Positions 22,701-55,800 of a stretch of DNA of 64,000 nucleotides are shown here, piece after piece; the first letter of the stretch is position 1; each line of letters opens with the position of its first letter. The position numbers were made by a program, and so were the translations under genes. The stretch comes from Mytilus californianus (lineage: Eukaryota), in assembly GCF_021869535.1 (NCBI RefSeq), contig NW_026262723.1, positions 40,424,001 to 40,488,000 of the forward strand, in the 5' to 3' direction. The notes under the pieces were generated by a model. The model ran no database searches and was not told the origin of the DNA. It saw nothing but the letters and a program-made list of their open reading frames with translations.

Positions 22701-25358
22701 AATAAATTAAGACTCCATTCTACGTTTGATATGGTTCGTTCGTTGTTGAGGACCCTGCGTCGGCTGTCAAGATGGGGAACGGGAGGGAAGGCCCTATTCA
22801 TTGGCAGTTTTCTATGTTTTCTGTGTGTTGTGTGCGATTTTGTCCCATGTGCATTTGCTCCATATCCTTTCATTTTCTACTAACTGATAAACATGGATGA
22901 CCTGTAGAAAAGGTGAATATCCAAAATTGTCAACCCGTTTAAAAAAGTATTCCCTAAGAAATGTCAAAACGCTGATGTCAAAGACTTGTAACTTTGTTCA
23001 TAGGAGGCAGACTTTATATTGGCGCTCCAGAGGAAGATTAAAATAAATTCGCATTATCCTTTATATTCTCAATCCGCTATACAGATAATGTCCTCTCACT
23101 AGACGATTCAACGTTTGTTGACTATGATGAACTTGAAATACAGGATACAATAGATACAGTTAAGTCTGCCTCATATCTTGACTTCCATCTAGAAATTGAC
23201 AATAACGGTCGGTTAAGAACTAAACTTTACGACAAAAGAGATTATTTCAGTGCCTGCATATGGAGTCAAAAATGTAAACAACACGTTATTAATTTCATGC
23301 GTCCGAGAGTAAATATCACCCAGTTAAAACGATATTCCAGAGCTTGCATTTACTACCATGCTTTCATTAACAGAGGATAACTACTAACAAGGAAGCTATT
23401 AAACCAAAGGTTTCAAGTGGTGAGGTTGAAGTCACTCCTTCGAAAATTTTACGAACACCATAACGAGTTGGTTGACCGTTGTAAAAAAAATGTTTTACAG
23501 ATGACGAAGAATATGTTTAAATTGTCGCAACCACAATCCCGTCCTCTCTTCAACAAATATGAGATCCCCAAATAAGATACCTAATCAATTAATAAAACTT
23601 GTCAACATATTTTATAGGAGTAAAACGACGGGTGTCACATATGGAGCAGGATCTGATTACCCTTCCGCAGCGTAGCACTTGAGATCAACCTCGTTTTTTG
23701 ATGGGATTTGTGTTGCTCAGTCTTTTGTTTTCTGTGTTGTGTTATGTACATTGTTGTCTTTTCGTCGTTTGGTATCTTCCGCCACTCTTCTTTTAATTCA
23801 AGATATGATTGGCCCTTTTCCTGATTACTATCTTCTGATTGATTTTAATTCTGAATAAGCAATCTAAAATTATTGATGAAATTTAATTGTCTCTACATCC
23901 TTGATTGGCAATTTCCACAAAATCATCCATACATATTGTAGCGTGTTTTTTATATTTAAAAAACGTAATTTTTGAGAAACAAAAATGGGTTGTTTTTTTG
24001 TTTCTTCATCATATATCAGAAGTATTGAAGTAAAGCGTTATATATATATATATATATGTTCCGGACCATATGAATATTTGGACCATACGCGTATGGTCCG
24101 GGTAATTAATACGATGAACGTTGAACAGTAATTGATTAAGGCATATGATAACTCTTCAAGGTGTCATCAATTTAGAGTTTCTAAAAATGAAATTTTAAAT
24201 TAGAAAATAATTTGGTAATTATTGTAACGTGATGAATGAAATAAGATAAAATTTAGTCACAAGTAAAAAATTTTGCATGATCATTATTAATTTTTCTTTA
24301 CGAAACACAATATGTCGAATCCGAAAATAACTAAATGGACTGTTTTAAAAGCAAGAAATCAACTGTTTTACTCATTACCAATTGGAGCATTCAAGCCTCC
24401 TTTTTCTCTATTTTGGTGTTTCAATTTGTTTTTTGTAAATTAAAATTTCTTAAACATTTCAAATTATTTTTAGTTATTTTAAACTTTGTTCATGCTCCTC
24501 TTTATACGATTTACAATTACAGTAATTTATACGTGCAGACCTCTATTCTTATCAACGTTTTCGGTCCTTATACATCCTTTGCTTTCAAATATTCGGCTTT
24601 GAGCGTTCCTGATGAAGGTAAATCCAGAAAAGCGCTCGGTCGCAAGAAATTTATAACGTGTTGTTTTCATATTTTATATAGAAACCACAGTTATTGTTAG
24701 ATCGTATGAATACGAGTACGAACACATCAGTTAAATGAAAATAAGTGGAAATTAGAAGAAATCAAAGAAAATCTAATCTAAACGCGAAGGGAAAAAGAAA
24801 AAAATTGTCCATGCCCCAAACACCTGTGATTTCAAGTACCGAAGAAACTGTCGACAGGATAAAGGTGCTTAAAATTGACTAGATAGCGAAGGCAAGACAA
24901 CAAATATACCAAGATTCAGACAATATGTAACAAAGATAAAGGATTTCAGTTAATAAATTTTGCCGATTTTAGTTCAGAGAACGAGCTATGTCTGTTTTGG
25001 AAGTTTGAATTTATTCGAAAAATATCTATATGGTCTAAATACTCATATGGTCCGGCCCGTTAATAACCAAACGAGTATATACTCATATGGTCATGACCAT
25101 ACACGTACGGTTCATATACTCATATGGTCCGGAACATATATATATAATGCGACACATAAGTTCTGCATTTCCAAACCAAATTTTAATCACGTTACTAATT
25201 TTTTCAAATCTATGATATCAAGCACACAACTTTAATGTACTTTCATTGACAATACTGCTGCAGTCTACGACTAATCAAGTTATCAAATTGAATGAGCATA
25301 CCTAAATGAAGATTTTTTTTCTTTTTATAGGTCTACAGAGTCACAGATTGTTGGTTGA
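16776..25358 (+). CDS. C-type lectin 1 (perlucin-like, secreted, single long-form CTLD, subtype I, QPN/WAD), predicted 154 aa
   Basis: Exons 16776-16827 (signal peptide MGFINFGIFLCCIFSIN), 20532-20611 (CKDGWTQFGNKCYFFSRQAESWIDAI), 21600-21687 (SFCRVFDSKLAEPLTSEESHYLISHSQHI), 22404-22620 (GNFWIGISD...QPGQPN...NCVALW...WADENC...FICETDI), 25331-25358 (STESQIVG*). All GT-AG with phases 1,0,1,2 and an open frame. WIG motif and six canonical Cys are present. Assignment of exon 1 is less sure than the rest. Confidence 0.82.
17500..18420 (+). pseudogene. Orphan remnant of a subtype II lectin intron 4 plus terminal exon, lying inside CTL1 intron 1
   Basis: 17500-18200 aligns by eye with 30480-31100 and 54330-54640. 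18330-18420 aligns with 55490-55600, including the acceptor tttctatttag|ggtt at 18380. Confidence 0.65.
23081..23770 (+). mobile_element. Penelope-like retroelement, degraded RT fragment plus 3' region
   Basis: Translates to DDSTFVDYDELEIQDTIDTVKSASYLDFHLEIDNNGRLRTKLYDKRDYF, followed by ...RKLLNQRFQVVRLKSLLRKFYE and the same 3' tail as 37431-37890. Confidence 0.8.
24057..25136. mobile_element. ~1.08-kb non-autonomous TIR element (TGT...ACA ends) inserted in a (TA)n tract
   Basis: TGTTCCGGACCATATGA ... TCATATGGTCCGGAACA. Multiple subterminal ggaccata/tatggtcc motifs at both ends, with (TA)n on both flanks. Confidence 0.8.
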
Positions 25359-25639
25359 ACACTGCTGTAATATGAAAAAGCAGATATATAAATCAAACTA
25401 TGTCTGTACTTTCGCAGTATTCATTGTTTTTTTTTATCTCTCAATTTAATATCTTACTTTTACTAAAGATAAATTCACTATTTTAAGAGGCCCAAAACAC
25501 TTCCGTTATCGACACAAATTCTGCAGACTGGTGGCAATAATTAAAGACATTGCTGATCACAGCATATTCAAAACCGTTATAACTACATCCGAAGATGACA
25601 AAAAAGTATGTTGTTTCAAAGAAGAATTGGTTAATAAGG

Positions 25640-25960
25640 TTTTGGATGCAAGCAATACATTCATCAGGAACGCTCAAAGCGGAAGTTTTGAAAGCCAAGG
25701 ATGAAGAAAATCGAAACAGTTGAAGAGCTATATAACTAAAAAGGACCTAAACATAGCCAAATTCATCTAAGGCCAACTTTATCTGAGGGAGTTGAAACCT
25801 TAGTTTCTTTATAATTTCAAAATTTATAAACGAACAATTTTAGAAAGGTTTGTTATAAATCATGTCAGTACCGAAGTAGACGACTAAGCTGATGATACCC
25901 TCGTGGACTGATAGTCCACCAGCAGAGGTATCGACCCAGTGATGTTAAAAATGAAAACAA
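25640..25960 (-). mobile_element. Retrozyme-type repeat monomer with truncated hammerhead
   Basis: Reverse complement of tcatcaggaacgctc is GAGCGTTCCTGATGA. The downstream block gataccctcgtggactgatagtccaccagcagaggtatcgacccagtg recurs in degenerate form at 14880-14940, 54820-54880 and 55260-55330. Confidence 0.6.
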
Positions 25961-27019
25961 CACGTCAAATGTATATTACGGCTAGTCGTACACTTATATA
26001 TTACAAGTTATTAGTTTGAAACATTTACCAAATTCGTATACTCAAAGGGAAATAAATCTAATTCCATTATTTAACAATTGGTCAAAATAGAGGATTACAG
26101 CACCCTTATTTCTGAGAGAAGGATGAGAATGTCATGAGGCAAGTATATACGTAGGACTTTTATTGAGGAACACATTGCTTCATACGCCTTAATCAGAAAG
26201 TGATTACATTTGAAACTTGCACAAACAGTTTTTAGAATAATTTCCGTTCAGTGTCATGATAACTTTAGAAGACTCGCTAAGCCGTAGAGCTTGATGTATT
26301 GCATCAACACTTGTATATTGTTGACTGTGTGTTGACCTCAAAATAATTCCTACAGATTTCTTTCAAATGTCCCTCCAACTCCTGTTTAAAGTATAAGTTA
26401 ACGTACACGAACTAAATGTTTTTATTACAAGAATCATTGTGGAGAAATGGAAAAATTGAAAGACCGACCTTTTTTTGTATAAAAATGGTAACCAGGTATA
26501 ATTCAAAATATTCTTTAGAAAACATGAAAATGTCTGTAACAAATAGTCCCTTACGCCCTCATACATATCTCTTCCGTTTTTGTATTTCGAACTGTTTTAG
26601 TCAGCGATCTTCATATTAATTAATTTTAGTGGAAACCTGATGAAATTAAGTGCACAAATGACTGACATACTTGATATTTTACATACTTTTTGGTTGATCG
26701 TTAAGGAATATAGGTATAACATATAACGTTACTAGGGATATGTTCTAACTGTCTTCTCCGTCATCTTTTGAACGGCTGTGACATTGCCAATGAGACTCAT
26801 CAGCGATTTCATACTAACCATGAGCAACATGACGTCCAGTCAAAACATGTTATGTTTTACATAATTATCAACTCTGCTTTGTTCTAATGGATACGCTTAG
26901 ATGTGCCTTTTTACGTATTCAAAAGGTTACATTCCTCAGGAAGACATGTCAACTATATAAACAATTTGTTGTGACTCCGATACTTATAGTTATCAAAGGT
27001 ACCAGGATTATAATTTAAT

Positions 27020-27063
27020 GCGCCAGACGCGCGTTTCGTCTACATAAGACTCATCAGTGACGC
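27020..27063 (-). ncRNA. Minimal type I hammerhead ribozyme within a truncated retrozyme/PLE-type repeat (~26986-27170)
   Basis: Minus strand reads GCGUCA CUGAUGA GUC-UUAUGUA-GAC GAAA C-GCGC-G UC^UGGCGC. The core is complete, stem II has 3 bp, stem I has 6 bp (one G-U), and stem III is short with a palindromic loop. Confidence 0.88.
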
Positions 27064-27580
27064 TCAGATCAAAAAAGTTATACAGCCAAACAAGTACAAA
27101 GTTGAAGAGCATTGAGGACCCAAAATTTCAATTTAAACATAGCGGAGAAGCAGCAAATACATGTACCAATTTTCAATTCCTTGGTTTTCTCAAGCCATGG
27201 GTCGAATCACAATCTCTAGAACTCGAGGTAAACACGAGACAAGCGATGCAGTTTGTGCAGGATACAAAAAATACAGTTACACGTTATATATATATTAAAA
27301 TATTGGTGTAATCACTGACTCATTAAAATATTAAAAATAATGTATAATAGACCATTTAGGTAGACATGGAAATTTTGACATGTTATGACGTCTAATGTGG
27401 CATTTGTCACTAAATTAAGAGAAGAACTATGAATGAATGAAACTAAAAGGAGTTGTCGTACATAAAGTTGCTTATTTATATATGTTGGTTGTGGATTTTG
27501 TATGCTTTACGCCATAACAATAACTGCTGTAACATAAGTATCATCAAATTTGTCGATTGATTTGTTTTCTTCTTCTCTAG

Positions 27581-29850
27581 GTTGAATGAATGGATGGACA
27601 CAATTTGAAAACAAATGCTATGCTATTTGTTCAGTCGGCAGGTGGAATCATGGATTGAAGCATCGGTTAGTGGATTGCAGGATTGTTTGCTGCTTATATA
27701 ATTTCAATTATTTATCTTTTTATTCAATTATTGTTCATCTTCATTTCAAATCTCGTGTTTTTAGCCTAACTTGGCGATAACGAATGGTACAATTATTTAC
27801 TTAATAACCAATACAAAACTGATATTATGGGGGTGAAAAGGTAACTTCTGCTGACTGCTATTCGCCATTTATTCAATTATTTAAAAAAAAAATCCAATAT
27901 AATCATTGAACAAACTGTCTTAAGATCATGGCAATTCTTACACATATAACAACAATGAAGTTACCATTGTTCAGAATGTCTAAAACGACCCAGAATTCTT
28001 TAAGCAATTGATTTTAAACAAAGCGTTATGCTCGTAACTACTGAATCAAGGCATTTATTTTCCTATGGAATAAGACTTTTACAATATGACCCTATTTATC
28101 TGTTTATAAACCTAATCCCTTATCTAACGGACTATATGATTTATCAACTATAAATGCACTACAAATACCCTGACATTGAATCTTTTAAAGATAGATATAT
28201 GGATTCGAGGGTCACAAAAATAAACCCCGAAAAAATCACTTAACTATCTTATGATATAAAATTTTACAGGAGTATATTATAAGTTTTAAGCATTCCTTAT
28301 GATATAACTTAAAGTATTTCATTTTTTTCATACAGGTAGTTCTTAAGCTTAATTTTTTTTCAAATGTTTTTCTATCTGTAAGACTCGAATTGTCCACCGG
28401 TCAGTTTGACATGTTCTCTTTAAAAGACAGTTTGTGGTGGATTTCGTTCTAAAGTTGCTGAGCCTATAAATACCAACACATCTCATTTCCTGATAAGTCA
28501 CAGTCAGATCATAGGTAATTTTTAATAGAATTATAAGCATAAAAAGAAACGAAAACAACACCGGAAAAACGACAAAACACAACAAAAAACAAATGATATT
28601 ACATGCAGAATGATTTTATGATTATCCTTATAACGAAGGAAACACATATTTTTTAATTTTCGTTATCCTAACAACTACTGCATGGACTAAAGTTCTCACA
28701 CCTTAAAACAAGATAAACCTAACCTTCGATTTGTAAAATCTTTAAATTTCAATGCTAAAAAAGAGACTGAAGACACGAAAAGGTCAATTAAAATTAAAAG
28801 TTGAAGAAAGTCGACCGCTCCATGGCAAAAACTAAAACCAACGAAAAATACAAACAACAGTATACAAAACACCACTCAAAAACTTAACACTAAGCAACAC
28901 GAATCCCATCAAATACCTGATATGATATCAGGTGCACCGGAAGGGTTAATATATCCTGCTCTCCTTGTGGTACCCATCGTGTTGCTCAAGTACATATTCG
29001 CTGATTAATCTCCTCCTCTCTATAAAAAGGCATAAAACTAAACAATAATGTCCACCATCACAACAGCTTTCATGGATCATGCTTAACGACTTCAAAACGG
29101 AGACATTTTTGTCAGCAGAAAATTGCTACCAGAACAAACTAAAGGCTGTGGGCTTGTGTACAACAAGGCGAATCAACATTATGTATACAATTAACTAAGA
29201 AGATTGTTTAAACATGTTCAAATCTAAATGTACGTAAAATGAATACGCAGTATAAAATTATTACTTATATCACAGATGTATTGAAAAAAGTGGGAATGGG
29301 TGGACGGAAATTAAACATTACATTCTGCAAGTGTGCATGACTGATATAGAATTTAAAAAAAAACGATGATAAATGAGGATTTACTTAATGTTTGCAACGA
29401 TATAAATTTCAACAAATATGAAGGAAAACCAATTTGAAAAATTTATAAAAATCTTTGAATAAACAAGGAAGAGTACACTATTACAACAAAGATATAAAAA
29501 AAGATGAAAAAAAAAGCAATAAACAGCTAAATCCCTCCTTTTTTGCTTTAAGAAAATAAAGCCATTTTCCGCTACTTTTGACAGATTCAAGTATTGTGCA
29601 TTTCATTTAAATGTTTTTTACTTCGAAGCGGTCACTTCTGGATAGGCATATCGGATAAAGTTCAAGAGAGAAAGTGAATATACTCAAAAGGACAGATTCC
29701 GATAAAAGTCAACATTTTTTTAACCAGGGAAACCAAATTCTATGACATCCGCAACTTGTGTCGCTTTGTTAGCTGGCTACTTTGGATACTGGGGCACATG
29801 GGATATGTCTTGCAAGTTACTAGTTCATTTGTGAAGCAGATAATAAGTTA
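27581..29850 (+). pseudogene. C-type lectin 2 pseudogene (subtype II, paralog of CTL4)
   Basis: Exon 2 at 27581-27665 has TGC>TGA and a 5-bp TGCTA duplication (85 vs 80 bp). Exon 3 at 28427-28514 is open (TVCGGFRSKVAEPINTNTSHFLISHSQII). Exon 4 at ~29629-29850 has a Trp TGG>TGA and several indels relative to 52551-52767. The signal-peptide exon is absent. Confidence 0.9.
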
Positions 29851-31610: not shown

Positions 31611-33020
31611 ATTTAATTCTAAATTCCATTTTTAAGGAACAAATCATGAAAAAACGTTGAAGATGACAAAATTATGTCTATGAGCTGATAGACAAATACT
31701 TTCAGCCAATCAGAAGACGTGCTACATCCAAAATTAAATTATTAACATTTAATGAACAGTAAGTTCACAGAAAATTACTGTAGACATGCTACTTCATGTC
31801 TGCACAGAAATGCTGATTACTGGGTCGTTGATACATGTATAAATAATCTCATTTTATCATTTGCAATATTGGTTTACCCTATTACAAATCGGTTTAAAAG
31901 ACAAATCAAGGTTACAAACACAATCTGAATTAATCGCATGAACTCCAAAGGGAGCATGACCAGATGTGTCAACAGGATAAACGTTTCTTGCAATGCAGGC
32001 ACCAGCCGCACTTTGAATCCACACTCAACAAAATGTCATAATCGGGAATGGGATACGATCGGTAAAGTTACAAATTATACGACTTTTCTTTTATCTAAAG
32101 ATCTAAGAGTGCGAAAACATATTGCTTGTGAGTTAAGACACAGACGTATTGTTTCGAAGTCGTGATGGAGACCGTAAAAACGTTATTTTGTCGATTTTGG
32201 TCGTTCTTCCACATAACTCTGTTTGAGCAGTTTTGGTATTTGATAGACATAGATCAGTCAGCGACAAGTACTTTTAATACCGTACACAATTCAGAATTCC
32301 ATGACTTCGTGTATTGTAACATTTGGTGGTCAAATTACTTTTAAAACGGGTATCAGTAATGAATATACCACAGACTTTATAGTTTTTACGATCTACAAAT
32401 GCCGTTTGTGTTTCAAAGAAATCTTGCTATGATACATAAGTTGAAAATAATACCATAATTTTTTACTATTTTGTATTTAAATGTAGCGTAGAATACATAA
32501 AAGAATTGCGGAAGATACCAAAGGGATATTCAAACTCATAGGATAAAGACATACTGACAACATCATGGCAAAAAACGTAAAACGACCAAAAATACAAACA
32601 GTTTACGAAGCACAACATAGAAAAATAAAAACTGAGCAACACGAAAGCCACCAAAAATTGAGGTGGATCTCAGATACCACAGAAGGGATAGCAGATCCTG
32701 CTCCACCTATGACACTCGTCGTTTTACTTCCATAAAATACGCTGAAAAGTTATATCAAGTGATTAGGCATCATGGCATCATGGGATAGCGGACTGGTAAT
32801 TGGCTCTTATATTAGACAAAGACATAACCAAATTCGTAAATCATTGGTCTTGTAAGTTTTTTTACACTAAAACTTGACCGAATGTGAAATTTTGAAGTTG
32901 AAACACGTTTTTCATAACAAAAGATAGTTGATAAACTTTGACAACTTGGTAATATGAATTCAAATCTGTAGAATGCTTGACTTTTCTACCTATATATAGC
33001 TACTATCAGTTTTATTACAA

Positions 33021-36000
33021 ATGGGAATACAGGTCATTAATTTCGTGGTGTTTCTGTGTTGTTTTTCGTCTATAAGTTGTAAGTAACTATTCAATTTAGC
33101 TTCAGCAAATAGGCGATGACATAGATTTTTATATAAAAAATCCAAATTTTGGCATATTAGAAAATAGAAAAAAGTATTCCACGGTGTCTTCTTCCTTTTC
33201 CTCTAATATAATTGTAGGAATTTTCATATTCAAATAAAATGCCCGTAAAATCGGAAAAACACAGTTTGAAGTTTGTCTGAAAGGGCTCATTTTTCAAAAA
33301 CCAAACCAATAAAATGTTGTTGCTAGATACATATTAATTTATATACGTCTATGTCAGATAGACTTAATCCAACGACAAACACATTTAACCAAAAGACCTT
33401 TAGCGGGAAACATTCAGTGTTCAACATTAGACAAGTGTCTTTATACGTCTATGTCAGACAGACTTAATCCAACGCCAAACACATTTAACCAAAAGACCTT
33501 TAGCGGGAAACATACAGTCTTCAACATTAGACAGTTGTCTATATACGTCTATGTCAGATAGACTTAATCCAACGACAATCACATTTAACCAAAAGACCTT
33601 TAGCGGGAAACATACAGTCTTCAACATTAGACAGGTGTCTACATACGTCTATGTCAGACAGACTTAATCCAACGACAAACACATTTAACCAAAAGACCTT
33701 TAGCGGGAAACATAAAGTCTTCAACATTAGACAGGTGTCTATATACGTCTATGTCAGATAGACTTATTCCAACGACAAACACATTTAACCAAAAGACCTT
33801 TAGCGGGAAACATACAGTCTTCAATATTAGACAGGTGTCTATATACGTCTATGTCAGATAGATTTAATCCAACGACAAACATGTTTAACCAAAAGACCTT
33901 TAGCGGGAAACATACAGTCTTCAACATTAGACAGGTGTCTATATACGTCTATGTCAGATAGACTTAATCCAACGCCAAACACATTTAACCAAAAGACCTT
34001 TAGCGGGAAACATTCAGTATTCAACATTAGACAGGTGTCTTTATACGTCTATGTCAGACAGACTTAATCCAACGACAAACATGTTTAACCAAAAGACCTT
34101 TATCGGGAAACATACAGTCTTCAACATTAGACAGGTGTCTATATACGTCTATGTCAGATAGACTTAATCCAACGCCAAACACATTTAACCAAAAGACCTT
34201 TAGCGGGAAACATTCAGTGTTCAACATTAGACAAGTGTCTTTATACGTCTATGTCAGACAGACTTAATCCAACGACAAACACATTTAACCAAAAGACCTT
34301 TAGCGGGAAACATACAGTCTTCACATTAGACAGGTGTCTAGATACGTCTATGTCAGATAGACTTAATCCAACGACAAACACATTTAACCTAAAGACCTTT
34401 AGTGGGAAACATACAGTCTTCAACATTAGACAGGTGTCTATATACGTCTATGTCAGATAGACTTAATCCAATGACAAACACATTTAACCAAAAGACCTTT
34501 AGCAGGAAACATACAGTCTTCAACATTAGACAGGTGTCTATATACGTCTATGTCAGATAGACTTAATCCAACGACAAACACATTTAACCAAAAGACCTTT
34601 AGCGGGAAACATACAGTCTTCAACATTAGACAGGTGTCTATATACGTCTATGTCAGATAGACTTAATCCAACGACAAACACATTTAACCAAAAGACCTTT
34701 AGCGGAAAACATACAGTCTTCAACATTAGACAGGTGTCTATATACGTCTATATCAGATAGACTTAATCCAACGCCAAACACATTTAACCAAAAGACCTTT
34801 AGCGGGAAACATACAGTCTTCAACATTAGACAGGTGTCTATATACGTCTATATCAGATAGACTTAATCCAACGCCAAACACATTTAACCAAAAGACCTTT
34901 AGCGGGAAACATACAGTCTTCAACATTAGACAGGTGTCTATATACGTCTATGTCAGATAGACTTAATCCGACGACAAACACTTTTAACCAAAAGACCTTT
35001 AGCGGGAAACATACAGTCTTCAACATTAGACAGGTGTCTATATAATAAGACAAGCTCTAAATCGTTCCGAGTATATAAACGTTGTAAACAAATTAAATAG
35101 AAACGAGTATTAGCTTTCAGTCAATGCCAAATTCTCAAAAAAAAATAAATACGATAAGACTACATGCAAGGATCCTGACTATATTTGGGGAAGTAAAATT
35201 ATTTTTTTGAAACTTTTAATATAGACCAGTGGATTAAAAAACGAAAATAAAAGAACATACAACAAAATGAAGTACATGACATACACTTAAATTAAAATAC
35301 CGGTATAATATCTTTGCAGTTTATCAGAGCAAGATCAACGTATTAACCTGCTGATAAGAAATCATGCCGTCCCCACTATTCAATAATGTTCTTGGTGGAG
35401 AAAACGTATTTATTTCTTTTCACCCCAAAACGCCACATTAAATGACGTATGATACAACAAAATTAATTTGGTGAAACATTCAACATCATTAAAGACCACT
35501 TATCCATTTCTGATAAAAGAAAAGAAAACATCGATGAGCCAGTTTTGGAAGGATGGGGATTTGTAAAGATACTATTCAGAGGGTTTTCATTTTAAGCGTT
35601 TGTACACAATTAAAACAGTTAACATTTACCTTTCGAACTTTTTATAAAAATTGAAAACTGCCTAAATTTTATACAATATCTGTTGACATGTAGCGTTCCT
35701 TTACAATGAAGATAAATCCTGCCATGAAACTATGAAAGCACGAATAAAAATCAACTCGAATAAAAAACAACACGAATTGCAAAACAGGAAGAAACGGGTT
35801 CATGGATTAATCGTTTTCTTTGAAAGAAATGTAGTCCTTTCGTATCCTGAATAAACATGAAATATTGGCCACTGAACATTAAGTAAACATGGTCATTCGG
35901 GGCCATTTATAGCTTTCTATATGAAATTGGTTTTCTCATTATAGATGAAATGGCCATACGGTTAACTCTGATTGTAACATATCAATTAAAAATATAACAG

Positions 36001-42000: not shown

Positions 42001-44268
42001 TTTCAGCAATCCCAATGAAGGTAAATAAAAAAGGTGCTTCAAATGTATAAAGTTCTATTCTAATTAACATATTACTTTATTTCTTTCACCTTAAAATTAA
42101 TGATATGCAGACAGATGTATAAATTGATACCTTTAAAGACTATCATCTTCCGAGGATATCCTCCATCCAATAACCAGTGCTCCGATATTTGCATGATATG
42201 AAGGACGCATTAAGCATTGGTACCGAAGATTTGATTCTCAATAGCATTGTGCAACACCATCAGACAAAGTTGTCCGCAAATAATTTTTAGGTGTTATGGC
42301 TATTTCAATTTATTTCCTATATTTACACACATTTTATGTCATTTATATTCTAACAAGTCTTGAGTCTTTATGTATACACTTATAATGCAATGTAAAATCG
42401 AGAATGGAAATGGGGAATATGTCAAAGAGACAACATACCGACCAAAGAGCAGACAACAGCCGAAGGCCAGCAATGGGTCTTCAACGCAGCGAGAAAATCC
42501 CGCACCCGGAGGTGTTCCTCAGCTGTCCCCTAAATAAAATTGTGTACTAGTTCAGTGAAAATGGACGTCACACTAAACTCCAAAACATATAAATGAACTA
42601 AAATTAAAAAATCATACAAGACTAACAAAGGCCAGAGGCTCCTGACTTGGGACAGGCGCAAAAATGCGACGGGGTAAAACATGTTTTGTGAGATCTCAAC
42701 CCTCCCCCTATACCTCTTGCCAATATAGAATAAACAAACACATAGCAATACGCGCAGTAAAACTCAGTTTAAAAGAAGTCCGAGTCCGATGTTAGAATAG
42801 GTAACAAAAGAAACTAAGCAAAATGACAATGCTATATAAACGAACAAAGGACTACTAGCAGTTATTGACATGCCAGCTCCAGACCTTAATTAAACTGATT
42901 GAAAGATTATGTCTTCATCATATGAAAATCTAGTACAATCCCTCCCGTTCGGGGTTTAGTATCATACCATCATAAAATATATGAAAAGAACATAACCCGT
43001 ATCATGCCAACAACTGGTTTTAGAATAAATGTGTTTATTTCCGACTCAAAGACCCTATGAGTGAATCAATATTAATACCAAAATATGCAATCTTTAATGA
43101 CTTGACAACAGTATCGTAACTATATCCTTTCCGAATAAGTCTGTTTAAAGGTTTGGTTAGCTTTTGAGGTGAATGCCGACATTTTTGTGCTTTGTAAAGA
43201 ATATTACCATAAAATATTGGATGTGAAATACCTGAACGTATAAGATGTCTGCATGTTGATTTATATTTACGAATGATGTCCTTGTACCGATGATAACATT
43301 TAGTAAAATAAGCAATCAAGGTTTGAAGAAGTAGGTTCCATACTACAGAAAATGTCAGATATTTCAAAGAACGTGTTCTTATATATATATATATATATCT
43401 TTACTAGATCCAGGCCTAAGATTAGATAAAACCCCTTCTTGAAAATATCAAAATAGTTTTTCAAACTTTGCAGGAGGAAACTTTTGGATTGGCATATCAG
43501 ATATAATTGATGAAGATAGATGGGTATACTCAACCGGACAAATACCGATAAAAGTTAATGATTTTCAACCGGGAGAACCTAATGCACATACTTCTGCAAA
43601 TTGTGTGGCATTATGGGCTGGTCACCATGGATACTGGGCAGATGAGGACTGTCTTGCAAGACGGCAATTCATTTGTGAGACAGATAATGAGTAAGGTTAT
43701 TTAAGAATAAGAACCCCCTCCCCAATAAAAGTAAAAAAGCAAACTCAATCAAATCTTGGAAGTGTGTTTTTTTTTTAATTACACACAGCAAACTTTATTC
43801 ACACCGTATTTTATGTTGGCACTGGCCTAAATATTTAAAATCATGACAGGAAAAGTTCAATATCAAATATTGCCAACCCTTACACAGTTTGTGATAGCAA
43901 CTTTTCCTACAATTTCAATTTACCTACAGCATGTGCATATTAAGTTCGCCTGAATTTTATAGACAGCGCATTTCAAATATAATCATCTTATGACGATGAA
44001 GTCTGACACAATATTCGGGATACGAAGCGTTTCATAATTGTACAAAATCCTTTTTTACTTCAAGACTGATACATACACTATTCATGAAATGTAAAAATTC
44101 AAAAAGGTTAACATTTTAGCTGATAAATGTTTGATATCAGATAGGAATAACATCTATCCGTCCACACCGGAATGCACGGTAGTATTACTAATTATTGACC
44201 TTAATGGGCATTCTCAAATGTAGCTTTTTTTTCTTTGTAGATCTACAGGGTCACAAATTGTTGGTTGA
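33021..44268 (+). CDS. C-type lectin 3 (perlucin-like, secreted, subtype I, EPN/WAD), predicted 156 aa
   Basis: Exons 33021-33078 (MGIQVINFVVFLCCFSSIS), 37917-37996 (CKNGWTQFGNKCYFFSHQVEPWTDAM), 41173-41260 (SVCRVFDSKLAEPMTSAESHYLISHSQHV), 43474-43690 (GNFWIGISDIIDEDRW...PGEPN...NCVALW...WADEDC...FICETDN), 44241-44268 (STGSQIVG*). AATAAA at 44304-44309. Open frame with canonical splice sites. Confidence 0.88.
33341..35043. repeat. Minisatellite/satellite array, 17 copies of a 100-bp unit, in CTL3 intron 1
   Basis: Unit atatacgtctatgtcagatagacttaatccaacgacaaacacatttaaccaaaagacctttagcgggaaacatacagtcttcaacattagacaggtgtct starts at 33341, 33441 ... 34241, then 34340 ... 34940 after a 1-bp deletion in unit 10. 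Confidence 0.97.
37431..37890 (+). mobile_element. 5'-truncated Penelope-like element 3' end (other partial copies at 19240-19370-, 20260-20460-, 28770-29000-, 32490-32730-, 37160-37370-, 44390-44760+, 50570-50930+, 60655-60830+)
   Basis: Encodes the RT C-terminus remnant RKLSNQEFQVVKLKSSLRKF*GRHHELVDRYGISVSQM, then the conserved tail ...ggagcacctgagatcacc...ggggttcgtgttgctcagtc...ggtatctttcgcctctcttt. Confidence 0.8.
39814..40398. mobile_element. Foldback MITE with ~175-bp inverted arms and TTAA target site (Kolobok-like GG...CC termini)
   Basis: TTAA|GGTTCATGTGGGCCC ... GGGTCCACATGAACC|TTAA. The arms include acagacaaacctgtg/cacaggtttgtctgt and aaggcatagcatgccctagataaataaaattcaaat with its complement. 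Confidence 0.85.
42393..43308 (-). mobile_element. Penelope-like element, RT C-terminus plus 3' UTR, 5'-truncated (same family as 57210-58965)
   Basis: ORF 43035-43367(-) contains FTKCYHRYKDIIRKYKSTCRHLIRSGISHPIFYGNILYKAQK...SLKIAYFG, nearly identical to the + copy at 58050-58320. The 3' UTRs also match. Confidence 0.9.
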
Positions 44269-45129
44269 CAATTTGATGTAATATATGATGATGCAGATAT
44301 ATCAATAAAACTATGTCCGCACTTTCGCACTATATTTTGGTTTTTTATCTATCCATTTCCTGAAAATCTCGGGTTGATTCCCTTTGTAAATTTTACCGAC
44401 GCAATCACGAGTTGGTTGACCGTTATGGAATATCTGTTTCACAGATGACGACGGATATGTTCCAATTGTAGTAACTACAACCCTGTCCTCTTGTCCCCGA
44501 ATGTAACCTACCGATCTAGGCTTATCATCGGGTTTGAACTTGCATGGGCAACGTTAATATGACGGGTGCCACATAATGATCAGGATCTGCTTACCTGTCT
44601 GGAGCACTGATATCACCTCATGTTTTTGATGGGATTTGTGATGCTCAGTCTTTACTTTTCTATGTTTTGCTTTGTGTACTGTTGTTTGACTTTTGGTCTT
44701 TTTCAGTTTTGCCATGGTGTTGTAAGTTTATTTTCGACTTTACGTTTGAATGTACCTTTGGTACAAGTGAGAGGTTAAGCTAGCTATAAAACCAGGTTTA
44801 ATCAACCATTTTCTATATAAAGAAATGCCTGTACCAAGTCTGGAATATGACAGTTGTTTACCATTCGTTAAATGTGTTTGAGCTTTTGATTTTGCCATTT
44901 TATAAAGGACTTTCCTTGGAGTTCTGTATTTTTGTTATTTTACCTTTTAGTATATTTCGCTTTTCTTTTGCTGGGTACATAAACTTAACAAGAACCTATA
45001 CAAACAACGATATATAGTCTGGTCATCTTTATGTTTCACAAAACATCATTCTTATGTTTGTACTACAATGTTTTCTACAATAAAAGATGGCATCAAGAAT
45101 AGTGGTGTTCGAATTTACGAACATATATT

Positions 45130-46892: not shown

Positions 46893-47260
46893 GATATGAG
46901 AAGATGTGGTATAAGTGCCAATGAGACAACTCTCCATCCAAGTCACAATTTGTAAAAGTAAACCGTTATACGTCAAAGTACGGCCTTCAACACGGAGCCT
47001 TGGTTCACACCAAACAGCATGCTATAAAGGGCCCCAAAAAATGACTAGTGTAAAACCATTTAAACAGGAAAACCAACGGCCTAATCTATATAAAAAACGA
47101 AAAACGAGAAACATTTATGAACCACATCAACACACGACAACCACTGAACATCAGGTTCCTGACTTAGGACAGGTACAAACAAATGCAGCGGGTTTAAACG
47201 TTTTAATAGGCGCCAACATTCACCCTACCTGAAACAATAGTGTAACATCACAACATATTA
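46893..47260 (-). repeat. High-copy interspersed repeat (solo copy of the segment that begins each 61.7-64 kb array unit)
   Basis: gaagatgtggtataagtgccaatgagacaactctccatccaagtcacaatttgtaaaag...ggcgccaacattcaccctacctgaaacaatagtgtaacatcacaac matches 61690-62030. Confidence 0.85.
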
Positions 47261-49939
47261 AACCTCTATCCATAACAGTGTCTTTATATCTACGTTTAGG
47301 ATGCCCTAAAAGGGTTGTCCACCATGTATACGATGACCTTAAAGTGGCGTGCTAAGAGTGCCCTCTTAGAACAATTACTATGCCGTTTTAAAAAGGGGCG
47401 GCCATCGTAAACAATAATCAACTTAATGAGTTATTAGCCAAATGCCCGAAACATCAAATTTCCAAACCAATACAGTGGAATACGAAATTCAGGATACTAA
47501 TTGAAACAGCTAGTGATTATCACGAAAAATGGGTCACGGGAGATCCAGATGAACCAAAACTGGACATTTTATCAAATGATCAATGCTGTTCGAGCATGAA
47601 TTCAGAAGCGAATGAAAAAAATATGATGCATCATGATCACATTGGTTTCTAACCCATGAAAAACTGATGTATGCTTTATCCTTTTTAATGACAAAAATGT
47701 TGTTTCAGCAGACATAACCTCAAGCAGTATTATGAAAAAATCTTTATTTTGGAATGCTTAACGGTAGAGGGAATTTTAAAAACAAAATTATGTGTTCTAT
47801 TCTTTAGAAACTTTTTTCTTAATACATACACATTAAAGAATCTTTACAAATAACGATATGTAGACGCATTATCTGGATGTTTCCCAAAATACCTTACTAC
47901 AGTTCATACTACCATTACTTCTACAGTAAAAGTTGACATTCAAATATAGTGTGATGAGGTCACCAATCAGATGAAAATTGTAAAACAATTCTGAAGATCT
48001 ATTCAGCGATCTTCAATCACAACCACTGCAACTTTGCATGAACACCCCCATTTTTTTTATTTCAATGCGCTCTGCACTTCTTTTCCCCGCGCTTAACTGA
48101 ATGATCGACTACATCTTCTCATTATACAGTGCTTTCTGTACAAAAATATGAATAGTCGTCTAATCTATAAATTTACCGATTGTGTCCTCATTTGACTTAG
48201 TGAAATCGCACAGCGGGTGCTGATTGCAAAGCAGGAGACGCTTGCCCTGTCGACACACCCGGTCTCGCTTTTAGAGTTCATTTGATTCCCGCAGGTTTTG
48301 CTATTATATATCGATTTTTTAATGGATTTATGACATTTGAACATCGGTAATCTACAGTAATCTCTTATTAAAATGTATGGCCTATTTTAAACTCGTCTAT
48401 ATTATCAATGTGAAATAAGGATTTGCATCTATCCTACAGAATATGAAGAACATTTCAATCATGAATTCTATATCTTATGGGACGAGATTCCTATTCTAAC
48501 CACACAAGTTGTCTTTCTTTGTTTGAAATCCGGGGGATTCCTCTTGTTTAATTCTGATGTTTGTGCTTACACTAGGGCGTATTTAGGTAAACAACCTTCA
48601 TATCGACTGCATGATTTCCTCAGGTGTAACGAAATGGAATAACGCAGGTTTCGGTGTCGCAATCGTAAGCTATGAAACTTTCTGCATTGTAGAAAAAGGC
48701 AGTGAGAGCTGGGGCCAACAAACTAGTTTAACCCCGCCACAGTTTGTATCTACCTGTCCTAAGTCAGGAGCCTGTAATTCAGTGGTTGTAGTTTGTTGCT
48801 GTATATCATATTTGTTCTTCGTTCATTGTTTTGTACATAAATCAGGCCGTTAGTTTTCTCGTTTGAATTGTTTTACATTTGTCATTTCGGGGCCTTTAAT
48901 AGCAGACTATGCGTATGGTTTTGCTGATTGTTGTAGGCCGTACGGTGACCTATAGTTGTAAACTTCTATGTTGATTGGTCTCTGGTGGAGAGATGTCTCA
49001 TTGGCAATCATACCACATCTTCATACTTTTATATTAAGGCATTACAAGAAACTGTCAACGTCATGTTGAGAGGGAAATATACTGTGAGACCTATTGTATT
49101 AGCACTTGTATACTGTAGACTTGTGTGTTGACCTTCAAATAATTGCGACAGACTTCTTTCAAATTTTCTCCTAACTCCTGCATAAAGTTAAGGTTAACGT
49201 ACATGAACTATTTTATTACAGAAATCATTGTGGAGCAATATATTGATTATATCAAGTGGCCGATCTTTTTTTGTATAAAAACCGATAACCAGGTATAACT
49301 CAACATTTTCTTTGGAAAAGAGGGATATACCTGTACCTAGTCAGAGATATATATATAACAGTTTTTGTGCATTCTTTCCATTGGTTGTAATAGTCGAGAG
49401 TTTGAAGTTGTCAGGTTTTATGGGCATGTCAGAAGAATTTGAGCTAGCAGTATATGGATCTAAATTCAACATACAATGAACAATTTGTTGTTAATACACT
49501 AATTATTACATGATTGACAAAGTTTTAAGTAAACACATTGCAGATTGTATGAATGACATGACATTAACTTCTATCAATAGGAAAATATTGAATACTAAAT
49601 AGTCTTATCAGCCTATTCCTTCGTAAGGAGACACAACACAAACAAATTTCAATTGACTGCATGGTATACCACAGAATAATTTGTTTAATAAAAATAAGAT
49701 TTGCAGCTCTATACACAAAATTTTGGTGTTTCAAAGAACACGTAGTATCGTTTCTTAAGTAGAGAATAAAATATCCTTATTTCTAATTCTTATGATTTCA
49801 AAAGTCACAGAGAATGTATAAGCATGAAGATAAGACATCTAGATAATAATGAACTATGCATGTTGAATCAATAAATTTGTGACGTAGAAGACAACCTTTA
49901 AACTAAGCTAGTATCTTATTACTTTACAAACAACTTGAG

Positions 49940-52900
49940 ATGAACGTGATTGTTTTTGTGGTGTTTCTATGTTGTGTGTCTTCTATCAGTTGTGAGTTAC
50001 CGTACAATTAAGTTGCAGTCACAGATTTTTAAAAGCAATTCCAACAAGGCATATTAACTAAATATGAATAAGGAAAATTAAATGCATGTTATTTTCTAAA
50101 ATATAATTGAATTATTTAAATGTCACGTATATTCATATTTGTATCAAATGCACGTAAAATCGATATAAAACATTCTTAAATTTATATGAAAATTATGAAT
50201 TTTAATAGACTAATCCATTCGAAGCTTTACAAAAATGGCATCTTGAAGCTTGGTTTGAAAAAGGTGGAATGAAATTCAATATCATTTGACACCGATTAAA
50301 CGGAGTTCGCTCAATTTCTGTTTAGTAAACTCATACATCTATATATCATATAATTTTAATTTAAGCATGTTACAAAAGTCTTGTGTGGTATATGAAAAAT
50401 CAAATGGTAATAGTCCCAGCTTCATCTAAAATATCTCTTCTGTTTATGTATTTTGAGCTGTTTTAGTTAGGGATCTTAATATTTATGTTGTTTGAGTGCA
50501 AACCTGATGAAGGTTAGTACACAAAATCTTTTTTAAAGCGGTGACATATTTTATTGTTTTACTTTACATGCTTTTTGGTTGACCGTTAAGGAACATCAGC
50601 GTCACAAATAACAATACCACGGCTATGTTCGATTTGTCGTAACAATTATCCCGTCATCTGTTCAACGATTGTGACATCACCAAATGAGAATAATCACCGA
50701 TTTCATACATACCATGAGCAACATGACGGGTGCCACTAGTAAAACAGGATCCGTTTACCATTCCAGAGCAGCTGGGATCACTCTAGGTTTTTTATTGGGG
50801 CTCGTGATACTTAGTCTTTAAGTTTTCTATGTAGTGTTTTGGACTTCTTTGTCTTTTCGTCGTCTTTCGATTGTTGGGCATTGTTAGTTTTCATTCGACT
50901 TATGAGTTTAGAGTGCCCCTTTGTATCTTTAGTCTTTTTATCATAATCTAGTTATCAATCATTGTAAAATAAGTCTTTAGAAACAATGTATCCATGTGCG
51001 ACGTGCTACGTAGAGAAATCTCATAATATTTTCATAACGTTTAATATTATAGGATTTATCAATATGTATTTGTATATTTAATACTGAGTAATAGAAAATA
51101 GTATAATAACCGACGGCCACGATCTTCAACAATCGAGGCGAACACGAGACAAGCGATGCAGGTTATGCAGGATAAAAAATAACAGTTGCACGTTTCATTT
51201 GTACTTAAATGTTGGTGAACATGCTTTACTCCATAACAATATGACTTTAAGTATCATAAAATCTGTCTATTGTTTTTTTTTCTATTCTATAGGTTGCATG
51301 AATGGATGGACACAATTTGAAAACAGGTGCTATTTGTTCAGTCGGCAGGTGGAATCGTGGATTGAAGCATCGGTTAGTGGATTGCAGGATTGTTTGCTGC
51401 TTACAGAATTTCAAATGTTTATCTCTTTTTATTCAATTATTGTTCATCGTGATTTTAAATCTCATGTTCATAGACTAACTTTGAAATAACGAATAGTACA
51501 TGCTTGTAACTACCGAATCAAGGCAATTTGTCCTATAGAATAAGACTTTAGAATGTGTTTTTATACAGGAAGTTCTCTTGCATAAATCTTTTATAATTAT
51601 TGGTCTATCTGTAACACTCGAGTTGTCCACCCAGTCAGTTTGATATGTTTTTTTAAAGACAGTTTGTGGTGGATTTCATTCTAAACTTGCTGAGCCAATG
51701 AATACCAACACATCTCATTTCTTGATAAGTCACAGTCAGATCATAGGTATGTTTTAATAGAATAAGGAGCATGAAAAGAGACGATAACAACACACAAAAA
51801 AAAACACAAAAAACAACAAAAAACAACATTACACAATGAAATGATTTGATGACCATATAACAAGGGAACAAATATGTTTTACTTTACTTTATCCTAACAA
51901 CTTCTGCATGGCCATGAACAAATCCCCTCTTCTCTATTAAAGCCTAATAATTAAAAAATTGCCACATCACTCCAGCTTTCATGGATCTTACTTAACTGCT
52001 AAAATATTCTTAAAGAGACATTTTTGTCAGCTGAAAATTGCTAACAGAACAAACTTATAGCCGTGGGCTTGTATACAACAAGGTGAATCAACATTATATT
52101 TACAATTAACTTAGAAGATTATTTAAGTATGTTCAAATTCAAATGCACGTAAAATGAATACACAATTTAAAATTATTACATATATCACAGATATATTGAA
52201 AATAGTGGGAATGGGTGGACGGAAATCAAACATTACATTCTGCAAGTCTGCATAACTGAAATTGAAATTCATGAAACGCTGATAAATGTGGATTTTCTTA
52301 TTGTTTCAACGATGTAGATGTCAACAGATGTGAAGGAGAAGACATTCAAAATAACCCTGAAAAACCGTTACAACAAAGATATAAAACATAGAATAATAGT
52401 TGACAGTTTTACAGATAAAAAAATTAAAAGCATGCGCATCGCAAAATTTTTACTTTAGGAAAAAAAAGAAAAACATATACCATGTTATCTTGCCTCTACC
52501 TTAGACACATAAAAGTAATACGCATTTTATTGAATTGATTTACTTCGAAGGCGGTACCTTCTGGATAGGCATATCAGATATAATTCAAGAGGGAAAATGG
52601 ATATACTCAACCAGACAGATTCCGATAAAAGTCAACAATTTTCAACCAGGGGAACCAAATGCTGGGACGGCTGCCAATTGTGTCGCTTTGTGGGCTGGCT
52701 TCTATGGGTATTGGGCAGATGAGAACTGTCTTGTAAGATACCAGTTCATTTGTGAAGCAGATAATAAGTAAGATTATTGGGGGAATACAATAATGCAAAC
52801 ACTATACGAAACATAAGTTAAAACAAAAAATGAACCAGATAAAAATAAATATCGATCCTTTAAAGAAAATTATTCTAAAAGGTTATCAATTCAACACTGT

Positions 52901-55564
52901 AATTAGATCTTGAACATTGTTTTATATTGATTTTGCTATCAGTAAATTAAAATCAAACTAAATATTATTTTTATATACATATGCACATTCATGGCTCTAC
53001 AATCTGTCGATACCTGTATCTTGGCATTGCACAAGGTCGTGTTTTTCTCTGACTGTTAGTGACGTCTTTACACTAAATCCATTGGATGTTGGATGTGTAC
53101 TGATTGATATTTTAGTCTTTGATGCATAATTGAATTTTTTTTTTATTAGTTGTTATTGGCTTTGAACTAGCTGTCAGTAACTGCGAGTACTCTCAGATCT
53201 GTACTTAGTGTTTTGTTTGTTGTTGTGGGATGTATAAGTACCCTGCTACGTCCACTCTGTGTTTTTGTTAGATGTATTTCTATTTGTTTCCATCTGATGA
53301 GTTAAGCCTTTTTCAACTGATTTTTTATAGATTGTTCTTATGTTGTACTGTTAAACCACTGTCCCAGGTTAGGGGGAGGATTGGTGCCTTCAAACTAGTT
53401 TAACCCCGTCACTTTCTATATGTGCCTGTCCCAAGTCAGGAGCCCGTAATTGAGTGGTGGTTGTTGTTTTTTGCTGTTTATCATATTAGTTTTTCGATTA
53501 TTGTTTGTATAGAGTGTTCTTGTGTTGTACTGTTGCACCACTGTCCCAGGTTAGGGAGAGGGTTTGGTGCCATCTAACTAGTTTAACCCCGCCACATTCT
53601 TTATGTGCATATCCCAAGTCAGGAGCCTGTAATTCAGTGGTTGTCGTTTGTTGCTGTGTATTATATTTGTATTTCGTTCATTATTTTGTACATAAATTAG
53701 GCCCTTAGTTTTATTGTTTGAATTGTTTAACATTTGTCATTTCGGTGCCTCTTATAGCTGACTATGCAGTATGGATTTTGCTCATTGTTGAAGGCCGTAC
53801 GGTGACCTATAGTTGTTAATTTCTGTGTCATTTGGTCTCTTGCGGAGAGTTGTCTCATTGGCAATCAAACCACATCTTCTTATTTTTATATGATATGAAA
53901 GAAAAAAAAAAGATTGGAGAAAGATATTCATTGGGTACAATTAAGAATTTTTTTAAGGCCAAATAAAGTACGAAGTTGAAGAGATTTGAGTATCAACATT
54001 CCGATAAGTTTTGCAAAAATAAATATAAGGTAATCTATTCCTGGGGTAGAAAATCCTTAGTATTTCGAACAATTTAAAGTTTTGTAAACAGATAATTCAG
54101 TGATGAACTCAGTTTTAATACATTAATTTAATGTATAAACGTCACAACGTATGATCATTAGGCCATGCAGGACCAACGCATTAGCTAATGAAGACAGGTA
54201 TCCCCGGGGACTGTTAAACCAAAATCGGCCGAAATTCGTAATTTTTGTTAACGTTGCTTTGTTTCTTTGTTTTCGTTTGAATTCTTTTTTTCTGTATACC
54301 AAGTTAAACGTTTTAAAACTATTTGAAAATTTCTTAGACGAACGTTGTATTCCTGTTATTTTAGCAATTGTTTGTAATCTATATTGAAGAATTTGTCAAA
54401 TTTAAAAAGAAAAGTCAAACAATTTTTTCTGATTTCCAAATAAAAAAAATCATTATCAGAAGCAATGATATGTCTTTTATCAACAACTTTTGTGTCTTTG
54501 CAATCCAACACGACAAGTACAAATTGTGATGGTGATGAAATGTAAAATGTTTGTCAGCACTACAAAATATGAAATGTAACTTTGATTTCAAAAGAAACTA
54601 CATTTAGCACGTGGAGGGTTTGACAAGTTTGTAAATATACAATTTACGTGTTTTTCTTTAAGTTTGGTACTTTTTTGTTTGATCAGCTTTTCAATGCTTG
54701 TATTACTTTTTTTGATTTTCAAATATGTCGGCCTTGAGCATAACTGAAGATACATTAATTGTTGAAATGCACATCTGGTGCAGGAATATTGATACCATAA
54801 ATGTTATTACTACCACAGGGTCGATACCTCTGCTGTTGGACTTTTAGTCCTCGACGGTATTATTAATCCAGTAGCCAGTACTGGCATGAAAATACTAATA
54901 CTGTTGTAAAGCTGTTTCAAAATTTCAAAACCATTTTAAGTTATGGAATGTATCTCCCTCATGCATAGCTCGGCCTGCTGGTCCAGGTTTCGCTTTACTC
55001 TTGGTACCTTTGTATTCGTCTGTTCTTTAGTGTTTGTATTATGTTTTGGATTTTTATAAATAAGACTTATCAGTGGTGCTCTAATAAAAACAGTTGTTAA
55101 ACCTAATCAATAACAAACCGAAAATATCAAAAAGAGTTGTGCCAAATCTGGTTTAGGCCATCTATTCCAATGGTAGAAAAACTTCAGTGTCTCGAATAAT
55201 TTTATAAATTTAATGAACAGTAAATTTACAGAAATTGATCGTATCAATTAATCAATGAAAAAGGAGTGCTGACTTCTGGGTAGGTAATACCCTCGGGGCA
55301 ATGAACTTTAAACCAGCATCGTCATTGACTATGTGGTTATAAAAAACTCATCAATGATACCAGTCAAACAATATTTTATATAAGGTATATCTTATTAGAT
55401 TATATAAATTATAAATACGATTAATTTGCATTAAGATATGCAGTATGCTAAAAAACAAATCCACAAACACTATTGTTTAGAGAAAAAATGAACAATTGAT
55501 GGAGAAAGGTATTTTGTATATTTCATAATGTATTTTTTTCTTTCTATTTAGGGTTGCTGGATGA
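49940..55564 (+). CDS. C-type lectin 4 (perlucin-like, secreted, subtype II, EPN/WAD), predicted 149 aa
   Basis: Exons 49940-49991 (MNVIVFVVFLCCVSSIS), 51293-51372 (CMNGWTQFENRCYLFSRQVESWIEAS), 51659-51746 (TVCGGFHSKLAEPMNTNTSHFLISHSQII), 52551-52767 (GTFWIGISD...PGEPN...NCVALW...WADENC...FICEADN), and putative terminal exon 55552-55564 (VAG*) with AATAAA at 55592-55597. Without the last splice the frame stops at 52769-52771. Confidence 0.85.
52898..53890 (+). repeat. Near full-length copy of the high-copy ~1-kb element, with an internal ~180-bp duplication
   Basis: Starts tgtaattagatcttgaa and ends gtctcattggcaatcaaaccacatcttc. The block tgttgtactgtt..ccactgtcccaggttaggg..gtcccaagtcaggagcc occurs twice (53340-53480, 53520-53660). 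Confidence 0.8.
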
Positions 55565-55800
55565 TGCTTTTACATGGATAAAGTGATAAAGAATAAATAA
55601 GGATAATCACAATTTATTATTTGTCATATTGTTTGCCACTTCAGGGATCGTTGCCCTTATATATATTGTGATCTATTCACGAAGACAAGCGTATAGACTA
55701 CAGAATTTTAAGTCTAAAGTTTTATGAAATAACAAAAAGTCATCATCAATTTTTCAATCAAACAATTAGTTATCTTTCAATTCAAATTGAAAAAAAAATC

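Follow-up and report, generated by a model that had tools for sequence, protein, structure and literature searches.

Glycine-terminated tails encoded by conserved terminal micro-exons in a tandem array of perlucin-like lectin genes from Mytilus californianus

C-type lectins of bivalves have been studied as immune, mucosal particle-sorting and shell-matrix proteins, for the most part as bare domains. Perlucin-like lectins with a single carbohydrate-recognition domain (PF00059) consist of a signal peptide and one domain of about 130 residues, which carries a WIGxxD core, an EPN or QPN motif and four cysteines, and their genes lie in tandem birth-and-death arrays whose members bear RefSeq names such as perlucin-like, tetranectin-like and asialoglycoprotein receptor-like. 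The stretch analyzed here, a window of 64,000 nucleotides (nt) from Mytilus californianus (assembly GCF_021869535.1, contig NW_026262723.1, positions 40,424,001 to 40,488,000, forward strand), is a tandem array of such perlucin-like, single-domain C-type lectin genes, comprising CTL1, a CTL2 pseudogene with in-frame stops, CTL3, CTL4 and CTL5, and it has these features in common with the other bivalve perlucin-like lectins. What the present subfamily adds is a terminal micro-exon that supplies a C-terminus of two hydrophobic residues followed by glycine (hydrophobic-hydrophobic-Gly). A 2025 review of bivalve C-type lectins makes no mention of such a tail, of amidation, of exon structure or of alternative splicing (PMC12842671).

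We favor, at a probability of about 0.8, the interpretation that these are genuine, conserved terminal coding exons of the array, ancestral to a lectin subfamily of mussels and oysters and kept by selection on the protein, with the tailed form as the default product. Under this scheme, exon 4 would close the lectin domain and end in phase 2, and splicing would join it to a very short last exon of 12-27 coding nt with roughly 50-90 nt of 3′ untranslated region and a poly(A) signal. This last exon would append a short acidic or Ser-rich linker with hydrophobic-hydrophobic-Gly at the free C-terminus, and any RNA left unspliced would encode a tail-less protein.

The donors, acceptors, tails and AATAAA sites that a sequence-only reading had reported for CTL1, CTL3 and CTL4 all lie exactly where that reading placed them (Table 1). 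Exon 4 of each of these genes ends in phase 2, and good pyrimidine tracts precede the acceptors. The CTL1 junction connects ATT GA/gtatgg (22620) with ttttatag/G (25331) and reads E-STESQIVG-TGA; that of CTL3 connects AAT GA/gtaagg (43690) with tttgtag/A (44241) and reads E-STGSQIVG-TGA; and that of CTL4 connects AAT AA/gtaaga (52767) with ctatttag/G (55552) and reads K-VAG-TGA. CTL5 has the exon 4 donor GA/gtaaga (GAG TAA) and, 5.1 kb further on, a micro-exon reading (E)SGEIPIVG-stop, which AATAAA follows after 48 nt. Two synonymous changes and one replacement (E/G) separate the CTL1 and CTL3 micro-exons, which are situated in terminal-exon islands (25291-25447 and 44203-44358, respectively) of 79% identity, the rest of both introns being unalignable; the CTL1 island is also 83% identical to an island in M. 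trossulus.

DNA as poor in G+C as this (32%) readily yields short open frames, and about 3-4% of the candidate short readings in control scans end in hydrophobic-hydrophobic-Gly, as would be needed if the tails were chance frames behind chance acceptors. We scanned both strands of the window for strong acceptors followed by a phase-2 reading of 2-14 codons. The + strand yielded 59 candidates, three of which end in Gly; these are exactly the CTL1, CTL3 and CTL4 tails, and all three end in hydrophobic-hydrophobic-Gly. None of the 46 candidates on the - strand ends in Gly. Because the sole Gly-ended readings are the three tails, the observation is real and above chance. Moreover, all three such sites in the window sit behind the three intact copies of exon 4, and the complementary DNA (cDNA) junction of CTL4, the RefSeq models and the cross-order conservation described below likewise speak against chance frames, which we regard as a negligible explanation overall and one already refuted for CTL4 and CTL1.

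The sequence-only reading had treated the longer tails and VAG as otherwise dissimilar tails that both end in Gly. The in-frame match between K-VAG-stop and Q-IVG-stop, 10 of 13 nt, is a short alignment that is weak alone. From this comparison, the CTL4 exon is probably best read as a version of the longer tail exon that is shorter by 15 nt, such that the two tail types would not be independent; a separate origin of the Gly in VAG was rejected given the same alignment.

Tails of this kind are annotated in other mussels. Orthologs and paralogs in M. galloprovincialis, M. edulis and M. trossulus end in SSESQVIG, SSGSQVIG, STQSPIVG and SASGQIPVVG, and these genes share the GA/gtaag donor, introns of 354-2521 nt and strong acceptors; the CTL5 ortholog (P0182) ends ...ESASGQIPVVG. 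The description of the micro-exons as hidden thus applies to the M. californianus models of CTL3 and CTL4, and not elsewhere, given that the CTL1 RefSeq model and the sister-species models have the tail. When CTL3 is compared with two orthologs, identity is 0.92-0.94 in exon 4, 0.47 in the intron, 0.71-0.74 in the 40 nt before the acceptor, 0.86 in the micro-exon, 0.58 in the 70 nt past it and about 0.42 further downstream. In M. trossulus, two genes whose RefSeq models end ...ETDAE keep intact downstream micro-exons (SSQSEIVG-stop and STQSQMVG-stop). The design recurs in five oyster species, and in one of them it is seen by setting cDNA against genomic sequence: exon 4 in an intron-containing (genomic-type) contig ends GA/gtaaga (GAG TAA), and a cDNA contig from another run splices over the 275-nt intron to SGGDVLG-stop. 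A second, adjoining lectin gene in the same oyster contig (L013 4707-4914) has the exon 4 donor AA/gtaat (AAG TAA), like CTL4, and therefore K-type and E-type junction codons coexist in oysters too.

To extend this comparison, C-terminal ends were tabulated for 65 short lectin relatives of four Mytilus species and five oysters (Magallana gigas, Crassostrea virginica, two species of Saccostrea, and Ostrea edulis); a representative-library search had returned mostly giant multi-domain lectins, with about 12 usable short relatives. Hydrophobic-hydrophobic-Gly ends were found in 32 of the 65; another 20 finish with the donor codon (E or K), and 13 have other ends, several of which resemble translated intron. 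In an alignment of 19 relatives picked for having the tail and ranging down to 31% identity, the terminal Gly is invariant, like the Cys residues of the domain. The codons that spell this ending vary (ATT GTT GGT TGA, GTT GCT GGA TGA, CTT CTC GGA TAG, GTC CTT GGT TAA, ATT GTC GGA TGA, GTT ATT GGT TGA), and such differing codons, used together with all three stop codons, argue for constraint on the peptide. Purifying selection on the C-terminal hydrophobic-hydrophobic-Gly is thus well supported by sequence comparison. The same evidence bears on the possibility that conservation acts on the nucleotides, through recognition of a short last exon or 3′-end formation, and that the peptide is irrelevant. 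The segment ATTGTTGGTTGA is identical in CTL1, CTL3 and CTL5, and the 40 nt before the acceptor are also conserved, as such a mechanism would predict; however, other genes and species encode that peptide ending by different codons, and we consider this already disfavored explanation very improbable. As a separate observation, many of the giant multi-domain lectins (P0024-P0172, 1,000-3,000 residues) end in ...[ST/G]-D-A, with Ala the most frequent last residue (33/179), and this may be a different kind of conserved C-terminal motif.

Elsewhere in the M. californianus genome, one remote paralog has the donor GT/gtaagt (GTG TAA) and a 31-nt exon reading AADIGNLLG-stop, and a second, on another chromosome, has a tail reading DIDGGIVG-stop. 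In a genome sample of 20 further last exons that encode lectin domains, 15 have an ordinary stop directly after the domain (for example, CEKH-stop), and the tail therefore marks one lectin subfamily. When the CTL3 tail island was searched against the genome at the DNA level, with sensitivity to near-identical DNA only, it matched itself and nothing else.

Use of a micro-exon in RNA was examined at CTL4, for which one raw-read RNA run and three sets of run contigs were aligned to positions 49900-55899. CTL4 intron 2 (51372/51659) and intron 3 (51746/52551) are each spliced out, with GT..AG joints, in contigs from runs X1 and X2, and these contigs therefore derive from cDNA. In X2, the same contig (299 nt, depth 154) also connects 52767 with 55552; the 2784 nt that it leaves out have GT..AG ends, and it extends 27 nt past the joint. 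The junction proposed from the letters is thereby found to the base in a spliced cDNA contig, and the CTL4 VAG exon is spliced in and used. Run X1 also contains a CTL3-type contig with a loose end encoding KLAEPMTSAE, which indicates that CTL3 is expressed. Together with the CTL1 RefSeq model, the ortholog models of CTL3 and CTL5 and the Gly-ended relatives, the CTL4 junction bears out the proposals that the micro-exons are genuine and that their Gly terminus is selected. Within and after CTL4 intron 4 lie repeats (about 52850-54050 and 55700-55900) that are very abundant in RNA-type runs, where contig depths in X4 sum to about 1.5 million and raw RNA reads map on both strands; they probably represent an active or abundantly transcribed transposon family.

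A second cDNA contig, from X1, (610 nt, depth 178) is spliced across exons 2, 3 and 4 but leaves the exon-4 donor unused, reading on into the intron cleanly for about 140 nt and raggedly to 52955, past an AATAAA at 52843. This contig raises the possibility of regulated dual output, in which use of the exon-4 donor would compete with intronic cleavage and polyadenylation, a tail-less and a tailed lectin would both be made deliberately and the stop codon at the donor would be maintained for that purpose. Besides the at least 140 clean nt read through a donor in RNA otherwise spliced at introns 2 and 3, this model can draw on the several RefSeq models, in four species, that stop at the donor codon, and on the immediate in-frame stop at 9 of 10 related donors. 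However, whenever a GTAA or GTGA donor opens a phase-2 intron, the unspliced reading is xxG TAA or xxG TGA, and the overlap between donor and stop codon, which the sequence-only reading had singled out as a special feature, is a by-product of phase 2 and the consensus GTAAG rather than a device; the single exception, CTL1 with GTATGG, lacks the stop with no obvious consequence.

The intronic AATAAA of CTL3, also taken to be meaningful in that reading, fares no better. With one AATAAA per 627 nt of the window, the probability of finding one within 40 nt is 0.06 per gene, and the CTL3 hexamer has no counterpart within 200 nt in the M. galloprovincialis ortholog and is displaced to +131 in that of M. 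trossulus. Across nine genes, the first intronic hexamer lies 10, 34, 77, 81, 82, 131 or 153 nt past the donor or is absent, so that positions are scattered at background density and no conserved functional intronic poly(A) signal was found among the nine. Past the tail stop, A[AT]TAAA occurs at 28-57 nt in six of the nine genes, and the offset is nearly equal (+36 to +38) in CTL3 and two M. galloprovincialis genes. The X1 contig itself extends well beyond the first intronic AATAAA and resembles intron retention or pre-mRNA. Contigs of this type give neither isoform proportions nor 3′ ends, and their assemblers (Logan contigs) may clip a short terminal-exon branch, so that the dominant form cannot be read from them. 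Of the proposal that each gene could make both proteins, what stands is that a tail-less CTL4 product is possible, given one read-through cDNA contig; a regulated isoform, and with it deliberate dual output, we judge unlikely.

The tail-less reference models are themselves open to another interpretation. RefSeq XP_052069243.1 (P0012) matches CTL1 at every residue, tail included (...ETDIESTESQIVG). XP_052069244.1 (P0007; span 37907-43691) corresponds to CTL3 without its tail and ends ...ETDNE, and the 'tetranectin-like' P0013 (span 51199-52768) corresponds to CTL4 without its tail and ends ...EADNK. Both tail-less models also lack the signal-peptide exons located by tblastn (CTL3 33021-33080, CTL4 49934-49993), and for that reason we read them as poorly supported: they look truncated at both ends and are not proof of a short isoform, a further point against dual output. 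The first exon of CTL3, CTL4 and CTL5 encodes 20 hydrophobic residues that resemble the signal peptides of the orthologs, an assignment made by similarity rather than with a signal-peptide predictor.

Exon 4 of CTL1, CTL3 and CTL4 matches Pfam PF00059 (Lectin_C) at 35-42 bits against a cut-off of 22.6, over profile positions 41-107 and with E-values from 2e-10 to 2e-8, and full-length relatives carry the same domain. All four Cys are invariant; in the WIGxxD core the Gly alone is invariant, with Trp and Asp present in 17 of 19 rows. The Ca2+/sugar site (motifs EPN or QPD plus WND) is putative: the sequences have EPN or QPN, but in most copies WAD takes the place of WND. AlphaFold2 models a confident core of strands and two helices, with low confidence in the long-loop region (pLDDT < 50) and in the tail (pLDDT < 50), which has no packed position on the domain; the tail is accordingly modeled as a flexible, exposed peptide. 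The N-E-S sequon noted across the CTL3 splice junction is real and is found again in the CTL3 orthologs and in both P0182 and P0194, with N-E-T as its counterpart in P0154. Sequons so near a C-terminus are often poorly used.

What the tail might do can be approached by analogy. The leading reading, held tentatively, is that the ...Ile/Val-Val/Ile-Gly end would be a substrate for peptidylglycine alpha-amidating monooxygenase (PAM), which would leave a hydrophobic amide end. A free C-terminal Gly after Val or Ile is the preferred PAM substrate, and Val-Gly is the classic PAM test substrate. At the level of predicted protein, Gly is the last codon before the stop in CTL1, CTL3, CTL4 and CTL5 and in the 32 relatives. 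Amidation through loss of a terminal Gly is taken to occur in other secreted immune polypeptides of bivalves, among them the oyster big defensins of 86-93 residues (PMC9786018) and the myticalins (PMC12294457). The genome contains 27 matches to the copper monooxygenase C-terminal domain, a type of match by which PAM is indistinguishable from DBH-like enzymes.

A possibility about as likely as amidation, and similarly tentative, is that the tail retains its free carboxylate and serves as a docking peptide in oligomerization, in recognition by a sorting receptor or in attachment to mucus or shell matrix. The two hydrophobic residues are conserved along with the Gly, the tail is predicted to be flexible and unpacked on its own domain, and a related bivalve lectin, GYL, is reported to be a dimer (PMC9965136), all of which would suit such a role; judged from sequence, the strictly invariant terminal Gly would fit an enzyme recognition signal better than a hydrophobic docking strand. 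A bolder version of the amidation reading, that a whole subfamily of secreted, folded lectins of about 15 kDa in mussels and oysters is amidated at the C-terminus by way of a dedicated micro-exon and that the efficiency of last-intron splicing tunes the shares of amidatable and tail-less protein, seems to us improbable.

Several points weigh against the interpretation of the micro-exons as conserved coding exons with a tailed default product, or against its functional extension. RNA proof of splicing in M. californianus comes from CTL4, in one contig from one run, and no read of the raw-read RNA run (X21) covered the CTL4 exons. For CTL1, CTL3 and CTL5, support for the tails comes from annotation or conservation. 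No recognizable signal-peptide exon of the kind seen in CTL3, CTL4 and CTL5 was found for CTL1 in the window, so that its description as intact is doubtful and the CTL1 copy may not be secreted. Finally, we found no report in the literature of a lectin amidated at its C-terminus, and searches on lectin amidation and on C-terminal Gly in perlucin returned nothing relevant.

Table 1. Positions in the window of the lectin exons, tail micro-exons and associated features
Feature	Position	Strand	Remarks
CTL1 exon 4, C-terminal half of C-type lectin domain, donor GA/gtatgg	22404..22620	+	Pfam Lectin_C E 2e-10; identical to RefSeq XP_052069243.1 (P0012)
CTL1 terminal micro-exon, coding part (E)STESQIVG + TGA	25331..25358	+	In RefSeq P0012; conserved exon island to about 25447
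CTL2 pseudogene exon 4, in-frame stops	29630..29847	+	tblastn and blastn
CTL3 exon 4, donor GA/gtaagg (unspliced GAG TAA)	43474..43690	+	RefSeq XP_052069244.1 (P0007) stops at donor
Intronic AATAAA, 34 nt past CTL3 donor	43724..43729	+	Judged a chance occurrence
CTL3 terminal micro-exon, putative coding part (E)STGSQIVG + TGA	44241..44268	+	86% identity to annotated M. galloprovincialis and M. trossulus ortholog micro-exons, versus 47% in intron
AATAAA, 36 nt past CTL3 tail stop	44304..44309	+	A[AT]TAAA at +36 to +38 also in two M. galloprovincialis genes
CTL4 exon 4, donor AA/gtaaga (unspliced AAG TAA)	52551..52767	+	Exon 3 to 4 cDNA joint at 52551, runs X1 and X2; RefSeq P0013 stops at donor
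Start of CTL4 intron 4, unspliced in X1 cDNA contig (tail-less ...EADNK-stop)	52768..52955	+	610 nt, depth 178
CTL4 terminal micro-exon, coding part (K)VAG + TGA	55552..55564	+	X2 cDNA contig joint 52767 to 55552
AATAAA, 28 nt past CTL4 tail stop	55592..55597	+	Read in sequence
CTL5 exons 1-2	59998..61416	+	Exon 4 and micro-exon past window end (L007 2374-2579, 7719-7746)
Decayed orphan copy of CTL4 terminal-exon region, reads VPRRCLCID-stop	18318..18436	+	75% identity over 124 nt; no lectin exon 4 attached

Other features of the array were noted in passing. A tail exon was sought downstream of exon 4 in the CTL2 pseudogene, and none was found. The first exon of the RefSeq CTL1 model (MAVGTCKTGDANPVETPSLSLL), at 17305-17370, does not encode a signal peptide; a loosely similar open reading frame occurs on the opposite strand at 31857-32024, and the exon may be repeat-derived. 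CTL3 intron 1 contains a 100-bp satellite in 17 copies of 95% identity (33340-35044). Upstream of exon 2 of the CTL2 pseudogene (27580-27662), a match to the type I hammerhead ribozyme (Rfam Hammerhead_1) occupies 27020-27063 on the - strand, with 34.4 bits against a gathering score of 34.

The gene structure as such is not new, for the micro-exon is already present in RefSeq CTL1 and in many ortholog models. The family-wide, cross-order conservation of a Gly-terminated hydrophobic tail on an exon of its own appears to be undescribed, as does the fact that several reference models are cut short at the donor codon. A terminus so strictly conserved in mussels and oysters, and encoded by its own exon, points to an unrecognized step of maturation or interaction, for which amidation would be the simplest candidate. 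Recombinant work that starts from the donor-truncated RefSeq models (CTL3, CTL4 and two in M. trossulus) would miss this conserved end.

Two other known systems offer comparisons. As in the 3′-end choices of immunoglobulin mu (secreted versus membrane) and calcitonin/CGRP, use of a donor decides the C-terminus, and both spliced and read-through contigs are seen for CTL4; unlike those genes, the mussel lectins have no conserved intronic poly(A) signal or defined intronic 3′ end, and the read-through product would be merely 3-8 residues shorter. With the Gly-extended precursors amidated by PAM, such as neuropeptides, myticalins and big defensins, the lectins share a C-terminal Gly preceded by a hydrophobic residue on a polypeptide that is secreted or, in this case, predicted to be so. 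They differ from these precursors in that a folded lectin of about 15 kDa, known here from its sequence, bears the Gly, and in that the Gly is the last codon of the gene itself, such that no trimming of basic residues would be needed to expose it.

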